From positions 34,365 to 98,364 of the forward strand of contig CDMY01000368.1 of assembly GCA_001179505.1 (NCBI GenBank): DNA of 64,000 nt, given 5' to 3'. Below, piece by piece: positions 6,647 to 36,737 of this stretch. A program made the position numbers and the translations under genes. The stretch is from Vitrella brassicaformis CCMP3155 (lineage: Eukaryota > Protista > Chromerida). The first letter of the stretch is position 1; every line of letters starts with the position of its first letter. The notes below the pieces were generated by a model that saw only the letters and a list, made by a program, of their open reading frames with translations, was not told the origin of the DNA and did not search any database.

Positions 6647-8917
6647 TCACGCCCTCAGCTCTTTCTCCCTCTCTTTCAACACTGTCGGCAGCACGTCAAA
6701 CCCATTGGGCTTGTCAATGCCAAGCACCTCCAGTGGCTGACCACCATACTGCTCCGAGCGGAGCGCTTCATTCGCAGACGCCTCTCTGTCGATGGCTTCG
6801 TCGTCATACGGCACCACACCATCGGGTGTGAGTGCCCTCAGCAAATCCACCCCGCCCCCAAAGACAGCCGACTTGACCAGCGCCGCCCGCACAGCGTTGT
6901 TGAGCTTGGTGAAGAAGCTCAGCGAGAAGGCGATGCGCCGTGTCCAGGTCTCGTGCTGGTCGTTATGCGGAAGGCCGGGCCATCCGGCCAGGAACCCCGC
7001 CCACATTGGCAGCTCGAGGTTGAAGAAGCCCCGGAAGAATGCCCGCAGGTTGTGCACGTTCTGCTGCATCAGGAACTCCCCACCGAACACAGTGAACTCC
7101 CGCTGACGCCTGAACTGCGCGGGCCACAGAGCGGCGTAGGCTGTGCGGGCGGCACGGTCGGGGGCAAACACGCCGTCGATCGGCTGACGGATCTGCACAC
7201 ACACACACGCACACACGGACAGAGGGATTGACCTCTGTTTTCGTCTGGCTGCAACCAAACACACACACACACACATACAAACGCACCTCTTTGGCGATAG
7301 CCTCGGCTGTTGGCGCCACTCCCGACATCATTCGGCAGATCATGTAGCCTGTGGCCGCATGCACCACCCCTGCCGCACCACCAAATGCTATCACCTGAGT
7401 GAGCCCAGCCCAACCACACGCGAACACCCCCCACACGACCACATGGGCAGTTCGTGTCTGTGGGTCAGGCCTGTAAGTCATCTAGATACCCACCCGTTGG
7501 TTTCGTTTGGGTATGGCGCCCCCCATGGGAATGTAGCAAAACTCCTCCTCCTCAATCTTCTGCGGCTCGACACCTGAGTGAGCCACAGGCACCCGTCACG
7601 AGCCTGTGCTTGTCTGTCGGCCATGGGTACAGGTGCCTATCCCGGCTCACCGAGGTATGCGAGTCTCTTCTTGAATCTCTCTTTGCATTCGTCAAAGGAC
7701 ATGGGCGGCCGCGCCACGAGTGAGGTCTCCTCCAGAAAAATGCGGCGCAGACCGCTGGCCGACTCGCCGAACGGCATCACATCTGGCAGACACGCAAGCC
7801 ATGTCGGTGTGAGCTGAAGCTCCGTGTGCCTGTAGTGACTGCATTATCTGCTCACAGAGGAAAGTGGGTTCCCTGACGGCCTTGTCAAGGTCGGTCTGCA
7901 TGGTGGGCTCTCCCTTCTGCGCCTCAGTGATGTAGTCGGTCCGGTAGTCCATGAAGAGCATCGCCCCCTCGTCAAATGGGTGCCGCTCACACTCACACAT
8001 GATGCCATAGGCGATCTGGAAACCAGGGTCGTGCCTCCCGTCCCGCTCAATCAGCTTCGACTCGTGGCCAGTGCAGTCCACAATCAGCTTGGTCCGCAGT
8101 TCGGTGCTTCTGCCGTCCTGGAGCCGCACAGAGCTGCCAGTGTCGTCGTGCCGCACAGATGAGGGGTCGATAGCAGTGTCAAGCATGACCACTCCGGCTT
8201 GCTGTGCGTGTGCGCGGAGTCGCTGCTGCAGCTTGATGCGATTGACGCGGGCGTATGGCCTGTGGATGCGGAGGGGTGTGGTGCCGCCAGGGTCGAGAAA
8301 GAGGTCAGTCTTCTCCCACCGATGGTCCAGACACTCATCCACACCCAACTGAGTCAAACATGCCAGGCAGGACACACACGGAGAACGGAAGATGTACGGG
8401 GGCCACCGCGAAATGTCGTGGTCAGTCACTACGTGACACACACCTGCAGCTGTCTTTCCACGGCTTCCCACTCGGCCACCCACACGCCGTAGTTGTTGGG
8501 CCACCTCTCGTGTATCCTCGGGTCAATCATCACCACACGCAGGCCGTACCTCTTGGCCAGCACGGCACCCATGGCAGTCCCAGCCGGACCAGCACCCACA
8601 ATCAGCACGTCCGTGTCCATCGACAGAGGAGTTGCGTCGACAGACGCATCGGCCTCGTTCGCTGTGGCCGAGAGAGCGGACAAAGGCGACGATGTGGGAC
8701 TCAGTGAGTGCCTCCTGATGCCATCCAGCCGCCTCCGGAACCGGTGATCTGGTGATGGTGTGGCACGCTGAACATCCTTGCGGCTGGCAGAGGGAAGGCG
8801 AAGGGATGCGGCATAGTGGGAAGGCGCGATGAAGAGAGATGTTGCAGATGCGACAGCCATTCTTATGCACGCCATGAACGCTGCAAAACGCCAGATCTGC
8901 CGGCCCTCTGCCGCCAT
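6647..8917 (-). CDS. LCYB: Lycopene beta-cyclase (CrtL/LCY type) with bipartite signal + transit peptide
   Basis: FAD-binding DVLIVGAGPAG, WPNNYGVW, PYARVNR, PGFQIAYG, MLFMDYR, FLEETSLVARP, IPMGG, VIAFGGAAGVVHAATGYM and C-terminal LWP...FGGEFL...FFNL, all characteristic of plant/cyanobacterial lycopene cyclases. The N-terminus is a hydrophobic signal ending ASA-TSLF followed by an S/R-rich stretch. The beta versus epsilon assignment is inference. Confidence 0.9.
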
Positions 8918-9109: not shown

Positions 9110-12100
9110 ATGCAGACGGAGATGTTCCCAGGCCATTCGACGCTGTTTGCCCTCCTCATCTGTGCTGTGCTGATTCCACATACAAGGGGTATATCCCACT
9201 CACAGTGCACCATAACAAACAGCACCAGAAATGTTTGCTTTTCGCCTGTGTGCATTTCATTGGCAGCTGTGTGTGGCGACGGCGTTCGGGGTGGGGACGA
9301 CTGTGATGACGGGAATGAGGTTGACGGGGATGGCTGCTCGGGGGCGTGCACCATCGAGACCGGCTATGAGTGCGACCCCAACAGCAATCCATCCATGTGT
9401 GCCTCAACATGCGTTGGGGAGAGCGCCCTCATAGTCTGGAGCCCTCCCAATAGACGTTACAGCGGCAGCAATGTTCTCGACCCCGGAAAGCAGTACAAGG
9501 TGCCGAATAAGGAAGAATGTGCCCGTCTGTGCCTGTCGAGACACGACTGTGCTGTTTTCGAGTGGAAGAGCCCGACCGACCTGTGCGCCATGGCTGGAAC
9601 AAGCAACCTAGCGGACAACCCAGAGACGGCAACGTTCTCCGGTCGTAAGGTTTGTGTGGAGCAGTGCAGCGCTATCGATCGGCCTGAAGAGGAATGCTAT
9701 AGTGAGCAAACACAACCGCCACAACCAGAGAGACACAGGTGTGTTGGGTGTGCCATTTGGTTGGTTTGTTGTGTGTGTAGGTTTTCCCTGCCGCATCGAG
9801 TGGGAGTGGCATATGGTGCCCAACTTTACCGGCTTTCACCAGCACCCCTTCAGCTGCCAAGACGACGCCCTGGTGGGAGCCAAACTAATCCACGTTGGTA
9901 CGTTTGTGTGGACTTACAGTGGCATCAAAGTGCCTGTATGTACATGTATATATGAACGCATGTGCAGGCAGCGATGCCGCCTGGCAATATGAATGCTGCC
10001 CCCAGCCCAATCGGACGACTTTAAGCGATGAGACAGAGGCGTGGACAGACGAAATCGGAGCATCAAGCTGGAAGGTGTATGTCCAAATGTTCAACCCGGA
10101 CTCGCCCATCTCATGCCCCGACAACAGCGTACTCACAGGGATGCACTTGAAGAAGCTTGACGGGCCAACCAGGACGCAGTGGGAGTAGGTGGGGGGCAGA
10201 GATGGTTCTTGAACTTCTTGCAACCCATTGACGTGCTGCGTGGGACAAATGTGTTGATTCTCAGGTACAACTGCACGGATCTCACGGCCTACACCCAGAC
10301 TCAGCGGGACAACATCTTCTGCCAGTGGCACTCCGTGGCCACCGGTGCTGGTCATGGCTCCATTTTTACGCGTAAGGCATTTGACGATTTACCCTCCCAT
10401 TCAGCACGTTCTTGTTCCCTTTGTGCTGGTGGGTGGCTGAATGCAGCCGATTCCTGGCGTGAACTGGAACACGCGCCACTTTCGTGTGAAACTCATGAAG
10501 CCTTGAATTTTGTGAATATGACAGTCGATTGGCAATCAGGACCTGAATGTAAGTCAGTGAGAGAGCGGGCCGCGTGAGCTCTCCTTCCTTTTCTCTTTCT
10601 TTGATCTTTTTGTTTCTTTCTGCTTGTTCAGCCTCGTTTGATGTGACGTTTGACTACCGATGCTGCTCTGTCACCTTGTGTGGCGACGGATGGGTAGGAC
10701 ATGAAGAGATATGCGACGATGGGAATGTCGTCAATGATGACGGATGCCGTGACAACTGCACTGTCGAGCCGGGATGGCTATGCCTTGTGCCAGGCAGCCC
10801 CTGCTGTAAGTCTGGGAAGAGAGACAGATCGATATCATTACAATGGCTTGCATTCTTTGTATTTTTCTGAAGTTTCCGTGACGACAACGTCTTCCCCCAC
10901 GCCGACACCCTCCCCCACCCCGACACCGTCCCCCACCCCGACACCCCTTCCAACGGCGCCGCCAGTGGACGACTGCTACTGCTCGGAGGGATCCGGATGC
11001 GGTAAGCGCACCCGAAGGGGACAAAATTATGCTTCACTCGGGCTATGACTGCTCTACTCTATAGACAACTCCGTCTGCAGTAACTGCAGGATTCGATTCG
11101 GTGACGTTCTCGAACGTTGCACGAGACTCGCGCTTACTTTGTTTTGTATTCAGACACTCCGGTTCGGTACGCCTGCTACGCCAATTGGACCTCCGACCAG
11201 TGTATGGAAGCCGGCGACAACTACACTTGGTGCGGCGGAGGTGAGCCATTCACCACGTGCCTATACCATCCATCCGCCTGATGTGTCAGGGACAGCTTCC
11301 CCTCCGGTTGTCACCACACCGCCCACCGAGGTCACGTCCCCGCCCACAAGCCCTCCCTCCTTCATCGACAATATCACAGACGACGACGTCGGCAAAATCA
11401 AGGTGACCACGGGTATACAATGCACAAGCCCTTCGACACTCACTCTCTCCATTGACGTCGCTTCTGACAACAGGAAGGGGATTCGCTCAATGACACGGAA
11501 GTGGGGAAGGCGATCGATGAGCTGCTGGAGGAGGAGGAGGACGCACCGCCAATTGACTCTGTGGACGCCTTCGCCGATCGGCTGGTGCGTGCGATCCAAG
11601 TGGCCGCTGCGCTCAAGAACGCAAGCAGAGACAGCAGCCTTCCCAACGGCACCGAGGGAGACACCAAGGCGCAAAAGCGAGTGATAATGAGGGCACTACT
11701 CAAAGACCTCAACAAGGCACGACGACCAACATCCTCTTGCCAGAGCGTCTCTGTGCCACTCATCGTTCCACGTCGTGTATGGTGTCTCTCATTCAGGTGG
11801 CCACCGAGCGAGGACGTCTGGGTGACGTGTCGAGCAGCGGAAGTGAGGTGCTGCTGTCCGCCGCTACACTCGCCACAACCATCGAGGCCGCTGACGAGGC
11901 CGAGACCGACGAGATCGACGACACCGCAATGGCCGTCAACACATTCGCCTCACTCGTCACTGTCTCGAGGCGCGCCATCGCACAGACCGACAACGCGACA
12001 CCACAAGAGAAAGCCAAAGCCCTCAGTGGCGTCGGCCATTATCTTGATGCGGCCGCGGGCCTCTTCAGGCAGCTCAACCGCACGGCCAAGTCGCTACGGG

Positions 12101-30410: not shown

Positions 30411-30839
30411 TCATCCCATTTTGGGTCTGGTATCGAACATCCTGCCGTTGGGGAACATGTGCTGCAGCTCAATGAATCGGTGGTTGCTGCTGTAGCGGAC
30501 CATCAGGGAGGCCTTGAAATACCCGGCATCGTGCCACGCCTTCATCTGCTCGGCGGTAAACTTGCCCTGCACGTTGCTCTTGGGATCCACATACCTGCAA
30601 CAATACATACAATCCAGAGGGAGGCCAGGCCACATTATTGCGATGACCGTGTCCCTCCATCCCTCCCTCCCGGGCCGCAGTGCGTGTGGTGTGGTATTGT
30701 AGCTTACTCCCAGCATCTGTCTCTGAGTGGGTCTGCCACCTCGTGTTGGTTTGCGATGGGGGGCGGCCGGGACCCCAGCAACGGCCGGAAGGAAGGGTCA
30801 CTCGTCAGCGGCCCGCGGTAACTCCCACCTGACACATTT

Positions 30840-30877
<38 letters not shown>

Positions 30878-33800
30878 GATGGCCATGCCGATGGTACCAC
30901 TGTCGAACCCGCCGCTGGCCATCGGCTGGGGGGCGTATGGCCGGGCCCTCTGCTGCTGCTGCTGCTGCTGCATGGTGGTGTGTTGGTCCTGCTGTTGGAT
31001 GGGAGGCTGCTGTTGGATGGGAGGCTGGGCTTGCTGCTGCCGATATGTGGCGGTCGGGGCGAACTGAGAGGGCATCTGGCCACCGATACCAGCTTGTGGC
31101 AGCTGTTGCTGCTGCTGCTGCTGCTGTGGTGTAGGTAGTCCCTGCTGCCTGCCGGGTGGCTGGTGCTGTGTGAAGGGGGAGGGCTGCGGGGGGCGGGGGG
31201 CGGAGCTTGACAAGGCAGACAAGACACCATTCCAGTCGTCAGGGCCGCCTCGCTGATGCTGCTGCTGCTGCTGCTGGTGGAGTGGCTGCTGGACCTGCCG
31301 GACGTCCTGCATGGCCCTGTTGGATGGCTGCAGGGGGGCCGGTGCCTGTCCACCGGGGGAAGGATAGTTGGGACGCTGCTGCCGTATCATTTCTTGCTGC
31401 TGCTCTTGGGGGGTCTTGGTGGTGGGCGGGAAGGGGGCCTGTCCGAAGAGCTGATGGCCCGGTCGCATGGCGGCAGCAGCGGCGGCACTGGGGTCTTGGG
31501 TAGATGGTGTGAATAGAGTCCTGTGTGGGTCGGGTGAGGGTATGTTGTCACCACCTGCCCCTGCCATGGGAAGGAACCCCGGACCCTCACTCCCGCCAAC
31601 ACCACCCTTGGGCAGTCGACCTACAGGGGAAGGGGGCTGCTGCTGCTGCTGCTGTTGGCGCTGCTGCTGCTGAGTGGTGTCCGACGGCATAACCGGCCGT
31701 CCAATGGGCTGCTGCAGGGTACCAGTGGTGCGAAGGTCCGGCTGGCCGTACGCCGGGGCCGGGGGCGCACGCCACGAGCCGATGGGACCAATCGAACTGA
31801 CACCACCTGACACGTCCATCCCATATGGCCATGGCACACAACACAACACAACGCAAATAAAGACCAACAGTGAGTGACAAGTGACATCGACATGACATCA
31901 ATCATATCTGAAGATGTATGGGGTGGGATGCATGTGGCTTTGCTGACCGACCGACCTTGTGCCACCTGCCCAGTGCCACTGGGCATGTGTGGTTTGTCGT
32001 GTCTGTCTTGCCCCGCAGGTGGGCTGTCGGCTGGGGCGTCGGGCGGTAGTTTGCCCTTGTTGATGTTGGCCAGCCAGCTGATCAGATTCTCACCCTTGGA
32101 CCTGCTCGGCGGTGGCTGCTGCTGCTGCTGCTGCTGGTCCACTGGCGGCGGCTGTGGTGCATTAGCAGGTGGGGGCGGTACGGTGTCAGGTGGGCCTATG
32201 GGTCTTGGAGGGGCGCCCCCCGAGGCAGCCAGCAGGCCATTGACTCTGCCGGGTGGCAGGGGCTGGGGGGCGGTCTGGGGGTGGGCAGATTGGGATGCGG
32301 ACGTCGACAGATAGTTGAGGGCATTCCTCAACAGATTCACGCGGCCCTCGCCACGCCCGTCACCCACAGCCCCGGCAGCAGCGGCCGCCGGTGGCTTCTG
32401 GTTGCTCAATGCTGCCTCACTCGGGGATGAAATGGGGGGCGCCTGTGCGTCGGGGCCGCCAGCAGCAGCGTCCACCTGCTGCTGCTGCTGTGATGGGCCT
32501 GGAGGGGTGGGGCGACTCTCGGGTGGTGGTGGTGGCTTGGCTTGTTGCTGGGCTGCTGTGTCGACGGTTGCCTTGGGCTTGGTGGGCTGACCACCCTCGG
32601 TGGGTGGGTGTTGAGGGGCAGGCGGGACTGCCTTGGGGGCAGCTGCCTCCGGGGTGGGAGCTCTCTTGACCGCTGGGGGGCCGCCCGACAATCGTGTTGT
32701 CACGTCAGATCTCTCAACATCTGCAGAGGTCATCGCATCCAAGGAAGGAAACCAGACAGACAGACAGACGGATGGATGGATGGATGGATGGATGGAGGTT
32801 TCCTCTTGAGATGTTTTGGTGCGTACGTACCTTTGTCCTTGTCCTTGACTTTGTCTGGGGCGGAAGTGTCTCTGCCAGCGTCCTCCTTGTCGCCCTCTCT
32901 GCGGTCCTTGACCTTGACATCCTCGACCTTGGTCGGCTGTGCCTCGGATGGCTCCCCGCCGGCCTCTGGTGGCTGCTCCTTGTCCTTGTCGCGCTGCTGA
33001 GCCTCCTTGTCACGCGCCCCTGCATGCATCAATCACATCAGGCAGGGCAGGCAACAAGCGAAACAAACACCACACCCACACAAACATGGTGCTGTGACTG
33101 CGGTGGGTTGGGGGGTGAGGGTCTCTTCTCTGGTGGGTGGGTGGGTGGGTGGGTGGGTGGGCGTGTGAGTGGTGTGTGTATGTAATGTAGCGTGTGTGTG
33201 TCTTTGTTGTCTTGTGCGGCCGCACCTACCAGCAGCAGCGGCTCGTCGTGCCCCCGGAGGTCGGTACACTCCAGGCTTGGATGTCGTGTCGTCCTCCAAA
33301 TTCAGATTCGGCTTCTCGGGGGGACTGCAGTGCAGTGCACGCAACACAAGACGGACAGACGTACAGGAGAGGAGACATACATACATACAGCAGACATGGC
33401 CCGTCCGGGCGGGATGGAAGCGTTGGTTGCCTTTTGCCTGACTGACCTGTATACGCCTTCCACTTCAGGTCTCCAAGCGACCTCAAACACCTCCGAAAAC
33501 TGCTGACTCGCCAACACCTTACCTGGACGGACAGCACACATAGCAATGAACGAACAGGCAGCCGAAGCACACGCGCGTCGGCAATGAGTGCAGTGCATGC
33601 CGTGCGGTGAGAAGAGGTGGGCCTGGCCTGTTGTCCCCCCCAGCTACCCAGAGGCAGGCCCACCTTCACAGTTCCAAATGGTGAATCCGTTGTCGACTCT
33701 TCGTCTGGGTGCGAGGACGGCCGTGAGAAAGTGCCGGCCGTCAGGAGCCCAGTCACACGATACAGTGCACGCGGCCTTGGACGAACATATCTTGCGCATC

Positions 33801-36439
33801 GTACGAGCCGCCGCATCGCGATACCAGAAGTCCATCTCACCTGTTCATGTGACACACACACACACGCATCAAATCAACCCATGGAGGGAGGGAGGAGGAT
33901 GGGATGAATGGGCCCGCTTCCGTGGCTGGCTGGCTGGCTGGCTGGTGGGTGGGTGGGTGTGGTCGACTGACCGGCGAGGTTGGCGAAGCCGCCGATGCAC
34001 ACGATGGACCCAAATGCATTCCACCTGCACAAACAACACAACACAACACAGAATACACAGGTGTGTCTATCGACTGCCGTGTGGGTGTGGTGTGGTGTGG
34101 AGTGGTGTCGTGGTTGTGCAGTGCAGTCAGTCAGTCAGTCGGCCTGCCGACCCACCGACCGTATGGTGTTGCGATATGCCTTGCCGAAGTCGAATCGCTG
34201 CTCGCACTTCTTGCCATCATATAACACTATCGCTGATGGAGGGATGCATTTCATTCAGACACCCAGAAGGCAGACAGAATAAACGACCATGATGTCATTC
34301 ATGTGGTGCTATGCTATGAATACGTGTCAGTCATTCGTCGTGTGTGTTGTGTTGGTTGATTACATGCGGGTGTGGCGCCTGAGATGAGAATAAATTCGTC
34401 TCTGACGGGGCTCCACTTGACGTCGGATGCGGTGCCGATGACCTCTACCTCCTTGACTGCCACCTTGTCCTTCAGGCCCTGACGGATGAGCGACTCCAGC
34501 TGCACCCACCACACCTTGCTCTTGCCGTAGTAGAAACAGCCAGACTTGTCCTCGTCGTTGTGCGTGTGCACCAGCAGCGCGTTGCCCGACGCAGACCACA
34601 GCAGGTCCACCTCGTCGGCCGTCACGTCAGCACTCACACTCGCGTCGACTGGCGGCGGGGGGCTGACACCCAGCTTCATGCCGCCCCCACCCTGCATGCC
34701 GCTCAACACACTCGCAGGCGGGGCCCGCACCGCACGCAGCGACTCCACGGTGGTCTCCTCCTTGACTACCATGTCGTACACCTGCACACTCGCGATGCCC
34801 TTGGCCTTGGACTTGACGAACGCCGCCAGCATCAGCCTCTTGCCCTTGGTGCCAACGCCCGACGACGACGACGGCCCATCGAAGCCGTTCTGGCGCGCAT
34901 GTGCGTGAGAGGGGCCGGGCGAGGACGGGAGGAGGGCCGTGGTGTCGATGGGGGCGATCTCGAAGCAGCAGAGGTTCTCGATGGGGATTCGCATCTTCAT
35001 GGTGCCCTTGAGGGTGCCGTCGTAGACACGGATCTCGGGCACAGCCGAACCCCTCGGGCGCGGACCGGGGCTCGAGTTGGGGCTCTGCACCGCCGCATTG
35101 GTGGGGGCCGTCAGGGCCGCCCACTTGTCCTTTGGCGGGGGAGCGGTCGTCGTGGTCCCACCACCCTCCCCACTGCCCTCGTCCTCTCGACTGGTGTCGT
35201 CTGTCGTCTGTCCAGCTGCTCCATCGGCCATCTTGTCAGTGTCGTCTGCAGGAGGCGGCAGTGCGTTGGCATTTGGGTTGGCTGTGGCGGTCTGGTTGGC
35301 GCTGGTGTCTCGGTCGGGGACGAAGAAGATGCAGCACAGCTGCTCATCTGCCGTCCATCGCAGGGCCGGCCAGTGGTACTTGGTGGGGATCCTCTTGACG
35401 CTCAGCGACGCGACCTTGCGGCCGTCCTTGGTGGTCCACACGAAGGTGTTGCAGGGCGCCCACACTATGCCATCGGACGGTGGGGGCGAGGCAGGTGGGG
35501 GGGCCGCAGATGGGGACGGGCCGTTCTCGAGCACCGACATCTGCTCCTCGGGCACAAACAGGGGATCTACACACATACAAACATACATACAGGCACAGCA
35601 CACAACACAAGACACGTACACAACTGGGGGGCGGGTGGGTGGGCGGATATCACCGACCGACCGACATGATGGATGGAGGCCAGACGTGATCTGATCACCC
35701 ACTGGACTGACCTTTGAGTGGCATGGTTTGCTGCTTTCCATCCATGGGTGCGTAGGTGACGAGGTAGGTGGACAGCGGCGACCAGTGGATGCGATTGACT
35801 GCCGTGCCGTCCCCGCCAGGGATCAGCACCGACCTCTGCAGGCTAGAGGCGTCCACTGGCGTGGGCATGGCCCCTCCAGGCCCGTCCATGTCATCGCGGT
35901 GGGAAGACTTGCCGCCCTGTCGTCGTCTACCCATATCCCACGACGGGTGCTGATGGATCGATGACACGTGTGCACAATGATCCAATGAATCGATTGGCTG
36001 GCGTGTGTCTGCCCTGTTTTCTTGTCCTTCGTGCAGTTGTGCAAGTGTGCCGTGCCGTGTGGTGTGGTGTGGTGTGGTGCGCACCCGTATGATGGAGACT
36101 TCCCTGTTGGAGCCGACAGAAGCCAGCGAACTGCCGTCCGTCGCCCAAGACGCAATGTCGATCTTACCAAGCTGATACGACCGATACACACGGGCAGAAA
36201 CACACATGCACAAACCGTTGGCAGGAGAGCACGAGTGGCAAGAGAGCAACGAGCAAGCCTGTTCTCTCTCTGTGTGGTCGATGCGATGCTCCCTCTCTCA
36301 AGGCTTCCGTCCCAAATCCATAGGTACGTACCTTGACATCATCCCATTTGTCGTCTCCGTCGCCCTTGGAGAATACGGTGCACCCGTCGCGGCCTCGTAA
36401 GAGAAACGACACGCTCGGACATCGCGGTGGCTGAGGCAT
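30411..36439 (-). CDS. EIF2A: Translation initiation factor eIF2A fused via a long Q/P-rich region to a C-terminal GYF domain
   Basis: eIF2A signatures: FLLRGRDG, HWSPLSTYLVT, HWPALRWTADE, DKSGCFYYGKS, DVKWSPVRDEF, FDFGKAYRNTI, IGGFANLAGEMDFW, WAPDGRHFLTAVLAPRRRVDNGFTIW, EVAWRP, PGVYRPPGAR. GYF exon WEYVDPKSNVQGKFTAEQMKAWHDAGYF (30594-30411). The intervening exons join in frame. The start codon is uncertain because a 5' intron is likely. Confidence 0.85.
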
Positions 36440-36737
36440 ACCGGACGGACCCACCAACACACCGACCGACCGACGGGCAAACACGCACCGCACTGACTGA
36501 CTGGCACACCGACCGGCCGGGCCGAGTGGGTGGGTGGGTGGGTGGGTGGACGGGAGGGAGGGAGTCTCCTCACTCACTCACGGACGCACCGCACCGCAGC
36601 AGTGGCACTAGCTGTACGAGAGGATGGCGGATCGAGGCAGGCCGAGGGCAACGAGGGCACGACGACGACGGTGGACGAGATGCAACAACACGCAACCGAC
36701 CTGAAGGCCACGCAACCAGCCTGCCGTTCACAGACAG

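Follow-up and report, generated by a model that had tools for sequence, protein, structure and literature searches.

The window analysed here, that is, the whole stretch of 64,000 nucleotides (nt) of contig CDMY01000368.1 (positions 34,365 to 98,364) from Vitrella brassicaformis CCMP3155, carries on its minus strand (36439..30411) a gene whose predicted product joins three parts: (i) an eIF2A beta-propeller of the seven-bladed type; (ii) a long linker rich in Gln and Pro; and (iii) a C-terminal GYF domain of the SMY2/GIGYF type. The gene has 13 exons, all of its introns read GT..AG (the boundaries were placed by means of anchor strings), and it lies in an intron-rich region of 57-62% G+C. A single open frame, which starts with the ATG at 36439 and is closed by the TGA at 30413-30411, encodes 1410 amino acids if exon 3 starts at 35835, or 1448 if it starts at 35949. 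After the propeller, the exons are joined by four in-phase junctions: AAA-G|ARDK (9|10, 33230|33019, phase 1), KDK-D|VERS (10|11, 32831|32720, phase 1), VAQ-G|GVSS (11|12, 31956|31806, phase 1) and CW-E|YVDP (12|13, 30708|30594, phase 2). An earlier reading of this DNA made from its letters alone (the sequence-only reading) had quoted these same four junctions, with no stop between them, and each was found exactly where it had been placed; the YRPPGAR motif, the poly-Q tracts and the strings PLPPGR, TPPGPS and QPPGRQ, also listed in it, are all present. Its structural proposal, namely one polypeptide composed of an eIF2A propeller, a disordered Q/P-rich linker and a SMY2/GIGYF-type GYF domain, is borne out by the gene model, by Pfam, by a closely related DNA (L001) and by homologues in other organisms.

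The Pfam scan was done exon by exon. The eIF2A domain (PF08662) is matched at the end of exon 4 (42.7 bits) and in exon 7 (60.6 bits; cut-off 20.5), and the GYF domain (PF02213) in exon 13, with an E value of 1.9e-15 and 56.7 bits against a cut-off of 25.7, over profile positions 3-45 of 45; exons 10-12 gave no Pfam match. The two profile positions absent from exon 13 are those of Trp-Glu, with Trp encoded by the last complete codon of exon 12 and Glu by a codon that intron 12 interrupts. A profile of the GYF domains of the fusion family, run against the spliced model, aligns across the 12|13 junction (residues 1345-1401, 74.8 bits, E 2.9e-23). Ahead of the linker, VYRPPGARR at model residue 654 aligns with the same motif in 16 relatives, and the Y, P and P of YRPP are invariant across a nine-sequence alignment.

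GYF domains are recognized by the signature W-x-Y-x(6-11)-G-P-F-x4-M-x2-W-x3-G-Y-F, and two subtypes are distinguished: (i) the SMY2 subtype, in which W-x-Y-x is followed by Asp and the first loop is short; and (ii) the CD2BP2 subtype, with Trp and a long loop. The domain encoded here reads W-E-Y-VDPKSNVQ-G-K-F-TAEQ-M-KA-W-HDA-G-Y-F; all of its signature positions fit except for Lys in the place of the Pro of GPF. The features of the SMY2 subtype are present (WEYVD, then 6 residues to G-K-F), as are the ligand-pocket residues (W-x-Y-x-D, F, W and GYF). As to the helical tail of canonical eIF2A (KKLRxIxxLK...EL..L), a profile of 24 canonical tails gave no match in the window protein, a search that a short helix could escape; the same profile gave only YRPP-proximal matches, in three fused relatives, and none further downstream in the GYF-bearing members. 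As far as these profiles can tell, the linker and the GYF domain seem to stand in place of the canonical helical tail.

The coding nature of the linker was assessed by comparison with L001, an 8.9-kb metagenome contig found through a 96%-identical open reading frame (ORF) in a word search with exon 4. It aligns to 39603-30843 of the window and leaves out only the last part of exon 12 and the whole of exon 13 (MAFFT --auto; ratios of nonsynonymous to synonymous change, dN/dS, by Nei-Gojobori counts). Identity amounts to 95-100% in exons and 81-96% in introns, and 24/24 of the covered splice sites are kept. Exon indels measure 3, 3, 3, 15, 9, 3, 9, 6, 18 and 6 nt, and intron indels 1, 2, 4, 5, 7, 8, 16, 19 and 20 nt, among others; there are three apparent exon indels that are not multiples of three, of which those of 4 and 20 nt are donor-repeat alignment effects at exon ends and that of 1 nt is a difference in poly-C length. 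In the model frame, dN/dS is 0.16 for exons 1-9 (2.31 and 5.25 in the other frames), 0.52 for exon 10, where there are only 6 changes (1.68 and 0.71), 0.73 for proximal exon 11 (0.64 and 1.28), 0.34 for distal exon 11 (3.27 and 0.93) and 0.17 for exon 12 (1.25 and 2.78). Therefore, the linker codes for protein in the model frame and is under constraint there. If intron 9 were read through, a TGA would follow after 65 residues derived from (CA)n and (CCCA)n; since this stretch has indels of 1, 3, 4, 5, 2 and 16 nt relative to L001, in good part not multiples of three, exon 9 must splice.

None of the runs recorded as RNA contains the locus. Direct evidence of splicing comes from X1 and X2, two small assemblies from public runs flagged 'RNA?', which consist of contigs only and are cDNA-like. 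Their contigs are spliced relative to the window and skip exactly 33325-33446, 33521-33661 and 32721-32830. Thus, X1 record 5 joins 33731-33662, 33520-33447 and 33324-33269, that is, it has introns 7 and 8 removed (with a 2-nt GT ambiguity at intron 7), X2 record 9 joins 33511-33447 to 33324-33237, and X2 record 8 joins 32893-32831 to 32720-32365, in which exactly intron 10 is missing and exon 10 is linked to 356 nt of exon 11. X1 records 1-4 match exons 11 and 12 without differences; among them, record 2 leaves the genome at 31954, which is the predicted donor of exon 11 (+/-2 nt), with 33 letters unplaced, as expected from a splice of exon 11 to exon 12. Exon 13 has X1 depth. Intron 9 has no X1 or X2 depth, the depth in its bin being fully explained by exon 9 sequence. 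Junctions 7|8, 8|9 and 10|11 are seen directly in these contigs, and we infer junctions 9|10, 11|12 and 12|13 from phase, conservation and homology. The parts of the gene are collected in Table 1.

Table 1. Parts of the eIF2A-GYF gene, in window coordinates, with the main observation on each.
Feature	Coordinates	Strand	Observation
Exon 1	36332..36439	-	Start codon 36439-36437 (MPQPPRCPSVSFLLRGRDG...); ATG and donor GTACGT kept in L001, 95.4% identical
Exon 2, first propeller blade (...IASWATDGSSLASVG...)	36085..36171	-	98.9% identity to L001, splice sites kept
Exon 3	35712..35949	-	Acceptor 35949 favoured; other in-frame acceptor 35835; exon region without RNA contigs
Exon 4, main eIF2A beta-propeller part with low-complexity inserts	34364..35566	-	PF08662 E 7.6e-11; L001 96.6% identical, indels 3, 3, 3 nt, dN/dS 0.20
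Exon 5, propeller	34160..34232	-	100% identity to L001; splice sites kept
Exon 6, propeller, GGFANLAG motif	33972..34024	-	GFGNLAG motif invariant among relatives
Exon 7, propeller (WAPDGRHFLTAV...RVDNG)	33664..33840	-	PF08662 E 2.5e-16; 7|8 in X1 record 5
Exon 8, propeller end	33447..33522	-	Junctions 7|8 and 8|9 in X1 record 5 and X2 record 9
Exon 9, YRPPGAR at 33246-33266	33230..33324	-	Y, P, P invariant in aligned relatives; donor kept in L001
Exon 10, K/D/E-rich, after YRPP motif	32831..33019	-	Joined to exon 11 in X2 record 8; L001 96.8% identical, one 15-nt indel
Exon 11, P-rich linker predicted disordered, two predicted helices (32296-32355, 32059-32097)	31956..32720	-	X2 record 8 and X1 records 2-4 match without differences; dN/dS 0.34-0.73
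Exon 12, Q/P-rich linker ending ...RDRCW (first GYF signature residue)	30708..31806	-	X1 record 1 on 30983-31770; dN/dS 0.17; indels 9, 6, 18, 6 nt
Exon 13, GYF domain and C-terminal tail, stop TGA 30413-30411	30411..30594	-	PF02213 56.7 bits
Whole GYF domain, spanning intron 12	30465-30712	-	

Regarding the start of exon 3, the acceptor at 35949 is preferred over that at 35835 because conservation in L001 rises exactly at 35949: from this acceptor onward (35836-35949), which starts at a conserved CAG, 111/114 positions are identical with no indel, whereas the sequence upstream of it (36084-35950) has indels of 1 and 12 nt. Exon 3 is, on this pattern of conservation, probably 38 codons longer than in the minimal model.

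From YRPP to the Trp of the GYF domain, the window protein has 696 residues. The linker, of about 680 residues, is composed of 17% Pro, 17% Gln, 11% Ala and 9% Gly; seven poly-Q runs of 5-13 residues each are present. AlphaFold2, applied to exon 11 alone, gave low predicted local distance difference test (pLDDT) values except for two helices, at residues 122-141 (32296-32355, GRVNLLRNALNYLSTS...) and 208-220 (32059-32097, ENLISWLANINKG), both of them in stretches of exon 11 that are nearly unchanged relative to the L001 DNA. By this prediction the linker is mostly disordered, with two short helices that may be regarded as candidate partner-binding motifs; alignment of the linker with the Toxoplasma protein gave nothing significant, helices included.

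The PPG strings of the linker had led the sequence-only reading to suggest that the protein might be autoregulated through these motifs. This idea was dropped as unsupported: the linker has 3 PPG where its composition alone would give 1.9 (P = 0.31), 0/3 of them have a bulky hydrophobic residue after the Gly, and the relatives mostly lack them. The analogy with GIGYF2-4EHP, also drawn at that point, turned out to be weak. A regex for the 4EHP-binding motif (YxYxxxxL-hydrophobic) gave 0 matches in the window protein and in five relatives, where the only YxxxxL-hydrophobic strings sit within folded domains, and GIGYF-like recruitment of 4EHP was discarded as well.

The sequence-only reading knew of no such fusion elsewhere, had named a search for proteins with both domains as a check and had taken prior annotation of the architecture as common for a refutation. 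Its claim of novelty is indeed refuted: the architecture was found already annotated in Toxoplasma gondii and Hammondia, and further cases come from Digyalum and Polykrikos, from MMETSP transcripts and from numerous environmental contigs that look like transcripts. A phmmer search with exon 4 against a representative library of 1.84 billion proteins gave 127 hits. Among the hits longer than ~725 amino acids, PF08662 followed by a C-terminal PF02213 was present in 9/10 of those tested, and 16 of the 127 match the GYF profile of the family. The following fusion homologues can be differentiated: (i) a protein of the apicomplexan Digyalum oweni (EP00916 P014284; 838 amino acids), which is the complete ORF of a transcript; (ii) a protein of the dinoflagellate Polykrikos kofoidii (EP00927 P021459; 727 amino acids), from a Trinity transcript; and (iii) the remaining ones, encoded by contigs of 2.8-3.6 kb nearly filled by the ORF, as is typical of environmental transcripts. 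A profile search built from nine fusion homologues added the members from Toxoplasma gondii and Hammondia.

The Toxoplasma protein (P0157 in our set; XP_018637316.1) has 1821 amino acids and is annotated as 'GYF domain-containing protein' and, in UniRef, as 'Eukaryotic translation initiation factor 2A'. Pfam places its eIF2A domain at residues 551-693 and its GYF domain at 1754-1798; therefore, even a very long linker has a precedent. The gene TGGT1_204160 has been described in print as an EIF2A homolog with a GYF domain (PMC10746186; mBio 2023), and a phosphopeptide listed for it (PMC10746186) is found in P0157 at residue 392, which ties the XP_018637316.1 entry to gene id 204160. A further candidate for the orthologue, TGME49_298610, which has been knocked out (PMC9729606), was rejected: 204160 is the homologue of eIF2A, and TGME49_298610 is another GYF protein. 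A literature search for 'eIF2A' together with 'GYF domain' found no dedicated study of the fusion.

Other searches were less informative. The word search with exon 4, whose length window hides fusions, returned only the 96%-identical metagenome ORF and one distant MMETSP eIF2A; that with the GYF exon (60-amino-acid query, candidates of 33-105 amino acids only) gave no match and is uninformative; and the ESM Atlas, queried with the GYF exon, returned generic GYF clusters only. The VAAMMRGE motif was sought across junction 9|10 and is absent from the window protein, so homology gives no help there. Within the family, one MMETSP transcript (P0138; 1006 amino acids) encodes an RRM (PF00076) at 228-292 before eIF2A, in addition to a C-terminal GYF domain; this three-module variant recalls the RRM-propeller layout of eIF3b.

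The window protein can be compared with four groups of proteins. (i) Toxoplasma TGME49_204160/TGGT1_204160 and its Hammondia hammondi orthologue share with it the order of propeller, long low-complexity linker and GYF domain at the extreme C-terminus. Over 59 residues of the GYF domain and tail, identity to P0157 amounts to 46% (BLASTP E 8e-15), the GYF domain starts in both with Cys-Trp-x-Tyr-Val-Asp-Pro, and both proteins fall within one propeller clade. Nevertheless, the Toxoplasma linker has ~1050 residues of unrelated sequence, the propeller inserts are larger, and the motifs read YRPK and GPF instead of YRPP and GKF. (ii) The short-linker eIF2A-GYF proteins of dinoflagellates and other alveolates (Polykrikos, Digyalum and environmental members of 554-1109 amino acids) have the same domain order, YRPP and a C-terminal GYF domain, but their linkers (unnamed, Digyalum and Polykrikos members) span 50 to ~540 residues and most of them carry after YRPP the VAAMMRGE that the window protein lacks. 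(iii) Canonical eIF2A (human EIF2A, yeast YGR054W, Prymnesium P0006, Aphanomyces P0013, Gloeochaete P0002) has the PF08662 propeller, YRPP and a charged stretch after it; in contrast, it is ~580-690 amino acids long, ends in a helical KKLRxIxxLK...Q..K...EL tail and has no GYF domain. (iv) GIGYF1/2 of animals and Smy2/Syh1 of yeast likewise carry a SMY2-subtype GYF domain in a long, Q/P-rich disordered protein; their GYF domain is internal, whereas that of the window protein is C-terminal and comes without a 4EHP-binding motif, and GIGYF and Smy2 lack the eIF2A propeller which is here the partner module of the GYF domain.

The origin of the fusion was approached with a FastTree phylogeny of 76 near-full-length eIF2A propellers from which the C-terminal regions had been removed (support values are local, not bootstraps). 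The window protein falls in a clade of 20 rows with local support 99. In this clade, 18/20 rows have a GYF domain, including those of Toxoplasma, Digyalum and Polykrikos, and the other two look truncated: P0031, whose eIF2A domain runs from residue 487 of 804, and P0029, with 551 amino acids. The presence of GYF requires 4 changes on the tree, versus 17.8 in shuffles. In the sister group lie two further GYF-bearing sequences and the GYF-less protein of Cryptosporidium andersoni. From this grouping, it follows that the fusion is old, was present no later than in the last ancestor shared by apicomplexans and dinoflagellates, and has been lost in some cases. As judged by the tree, the fusion in the window is inherited and was not invented there. 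The fusion is not new: it belongs to an annotated, widespread and functionally unstudied alveolate family.

Several points weigh against the preferred reading of the locus, its mechanism included: (i) spliced RNA over 33230-30594 had been named as a check of the sequence-only reading, and within that interval junction 10|11 is seen in X2 record 8, but 9|10, 11|12 and 12|13 are not bridged by the X1 and X2 contigs; (ii) contig-only data carry no transcript ends, polyadenylation sites or isoform ratios; (iii) the donor of intron 12, GA|GTAAGC, puts an in-frame TAA at once if left unspliced (..CWE, then the stop); (iv) the GPF of the GYF signature is GKF in this protein; (v) an 11-C run (~32436-32443, exon 11) is longer by one C in L001, whose frame, as assembled, ends within exon 11; and (vi) the function of eIF2A itself is unsettled. 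The extra C is likely an assembly error or a very recent change, because the model frame remains under purifying selection beyond it and because the window version is found in X1 record 4, X2 record 8, and X3 and X5 DNA contigs.

Among the alternatives, the one that survives best grants a single gene but gives it two products. According to it, retention of intron 12, or a stop at the TAA overlapping its donor, would yield an eIF2A-linker protein without a GYF domain beside the full fusion, and attachment of this domain would be regulated by splicing. The immediate TAA behind the donor fits such a scheme, and no RNA contig bridges 30708|30594. However, there is no positive evidence for retention, X1 depth is present on exon 13, the signature Trp of the GYF domain lies in exon 12, and the family profile aligns across 12|13; these last two facts point to the spliced form as the conserved product, and the alternative is improbable. 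Convergence, in which a GYF domain would have joined eIF2A independently in this lineage, agrees with the fact that the window and Toxoplasma linkers cannot be aligned. Against it stand (i) the position of the propeller within the clade of support 99, where the only two GYF-less rows look truncated; (ii) the 46% identity of the GYF domain and tail to those of Toxoplasma, both of which begin with Cys-Trp and close the protein with a similar FP...F...PK stretch; and (iii) the invariable location of the GYF domain, always C-terminal and after YRPP. An independent origin is highly improbable. Finally, two adjacent genes, that is, an ordinary eIF2A ending after exon 9 or 10 and a separate downstream Q/P-rich GYF protein, with phases that match by coincidence, are hardly credible: besides the three unbridged junctions, this arrangement has in its favour an in-frame ATG 9 nt upstream of exon 10 (33028), just past the TGA that closes the exon 9 read-through, but that read-through would add 65 microsatellite-derived residues in a stretch with non-triplet indels and no RNA-contig depth, X2 record 8 joins exons 10 and 11, L001 keeps every donor and acceptor that it covers, the two domains share one ORF in orthologous single transcripts from Digyalum, Polykrikos and MMETSP and in the Toxoplasma gene, and the window propeller sits phylogenetically within the fused clade.

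That the locus encodes a single fusion protein is very likely. In its full form, namely one gene for a cytoplasmic, translation-associated protein of 1410-1448 amino acids, orthologous to the apicomplexan and dinoflagellate eIF2A-GYF family (TGME49_204160), it is given a probability of roughly 0.85.

As for what such an eIF2A-GYF protein may do, eIF2A binds the 40S subunit, and SMY2-type GYF domains, such as those of Smy2/Syh1 and GIGYF1/2, bind PPG-hydrophobic motifs in their partners. By analogy, the protein could be an adaptor that, anchored to the ribosome, serves translational repression or mRNA surveillance, instead of a classical initiator-tRNA delivery factor, a tentative proposal to which we assign slightly less than an even chance. 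In this scheme, (i) the propeller would bind the 40S subunit in the manner of eIF2A and so hold the protein there; (ii) the GYF domain, on its long flexible tether, would capture PPG-hydrophobic motifs of other regulators associated with messenger ribonucleoproteins (mRNPs) or ribosomes; (iii) the tethered domain would thereby recruit repressors or surveillance factors that bear proline motifs; and (iv) the Q/P-rich linker may add affinity for condensates (granules). Two pieces of context are in line with this proposal. In Toxoplasma, TGGT1_204160 is labelled by PPKL-TurboID alongside PABP, DDX6, NOT1 and an eIF3 subunit, and its phosphorylation is PPKL-dependent (PMC10746186). In yeast, eIF2A, Smy2 and Syh1 have all been captured by BioID at the 40S head (PMC8583833).

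The fusion might even serve as a 'Rosetta stone' for eIF2A in general, in the sense that the core job of this protein in eukaryotes would lie in repression or surveillance at the 40S head, together with GYF adaptors (Smy2/Syh1, GIGYF), and not in the delivery of initiator tRNA, the linker helices being further partner-binding motifs in the present case. This idea is suggested by the old, conserved link between eIF2A and a SMY2-type GYF domain together with the loss of the usual eIF2A tail, and we consider it doubtful. In any case, the locus itself is ordinary: the gene had been read correctly, and its family is already annotated in Toxoplasma and noted in print. What gives it relevance is that the eIF2A-GYF family is almost unstudied and the cellular role of eIF2A disputed; a fusion conserved in apicomplexans and dinoflagellates hints at joint action, on the small ribosomal subunit, of eIF2A and mRNP regulators that bind proline motifs, a hint that can be tested cheaply and for which Toxoplasma genetics is well suited. 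The practical gain lies in a checked 13-exon model and in a linker shown to be under purifying selection.

Nearly all introns of the gene hold tetra- or pentanucleotide microsatellites, such as (GGTG)n, (GGAT)n, (TGGC)n and (GTGTG)n (e.g., at 33132-33172, 32770-32796, 33923-33956 and 36526-36549). When sequences are mapped to the window, these repeats draw in hundreds of unrelated contigs and create false 'joints'. Elsewhere in the window, two ORFs taken together are what a plastid-bearing alveolate such as a chromerid would be expected to have: an ORF at 7695-8504 on the minus strand matches lycopene cyclase (PF05834, E 1.3e-21), and near it an ORF at 9110-9952 on the plus strand contains a PAN/apple domain (E 1.5e-4).

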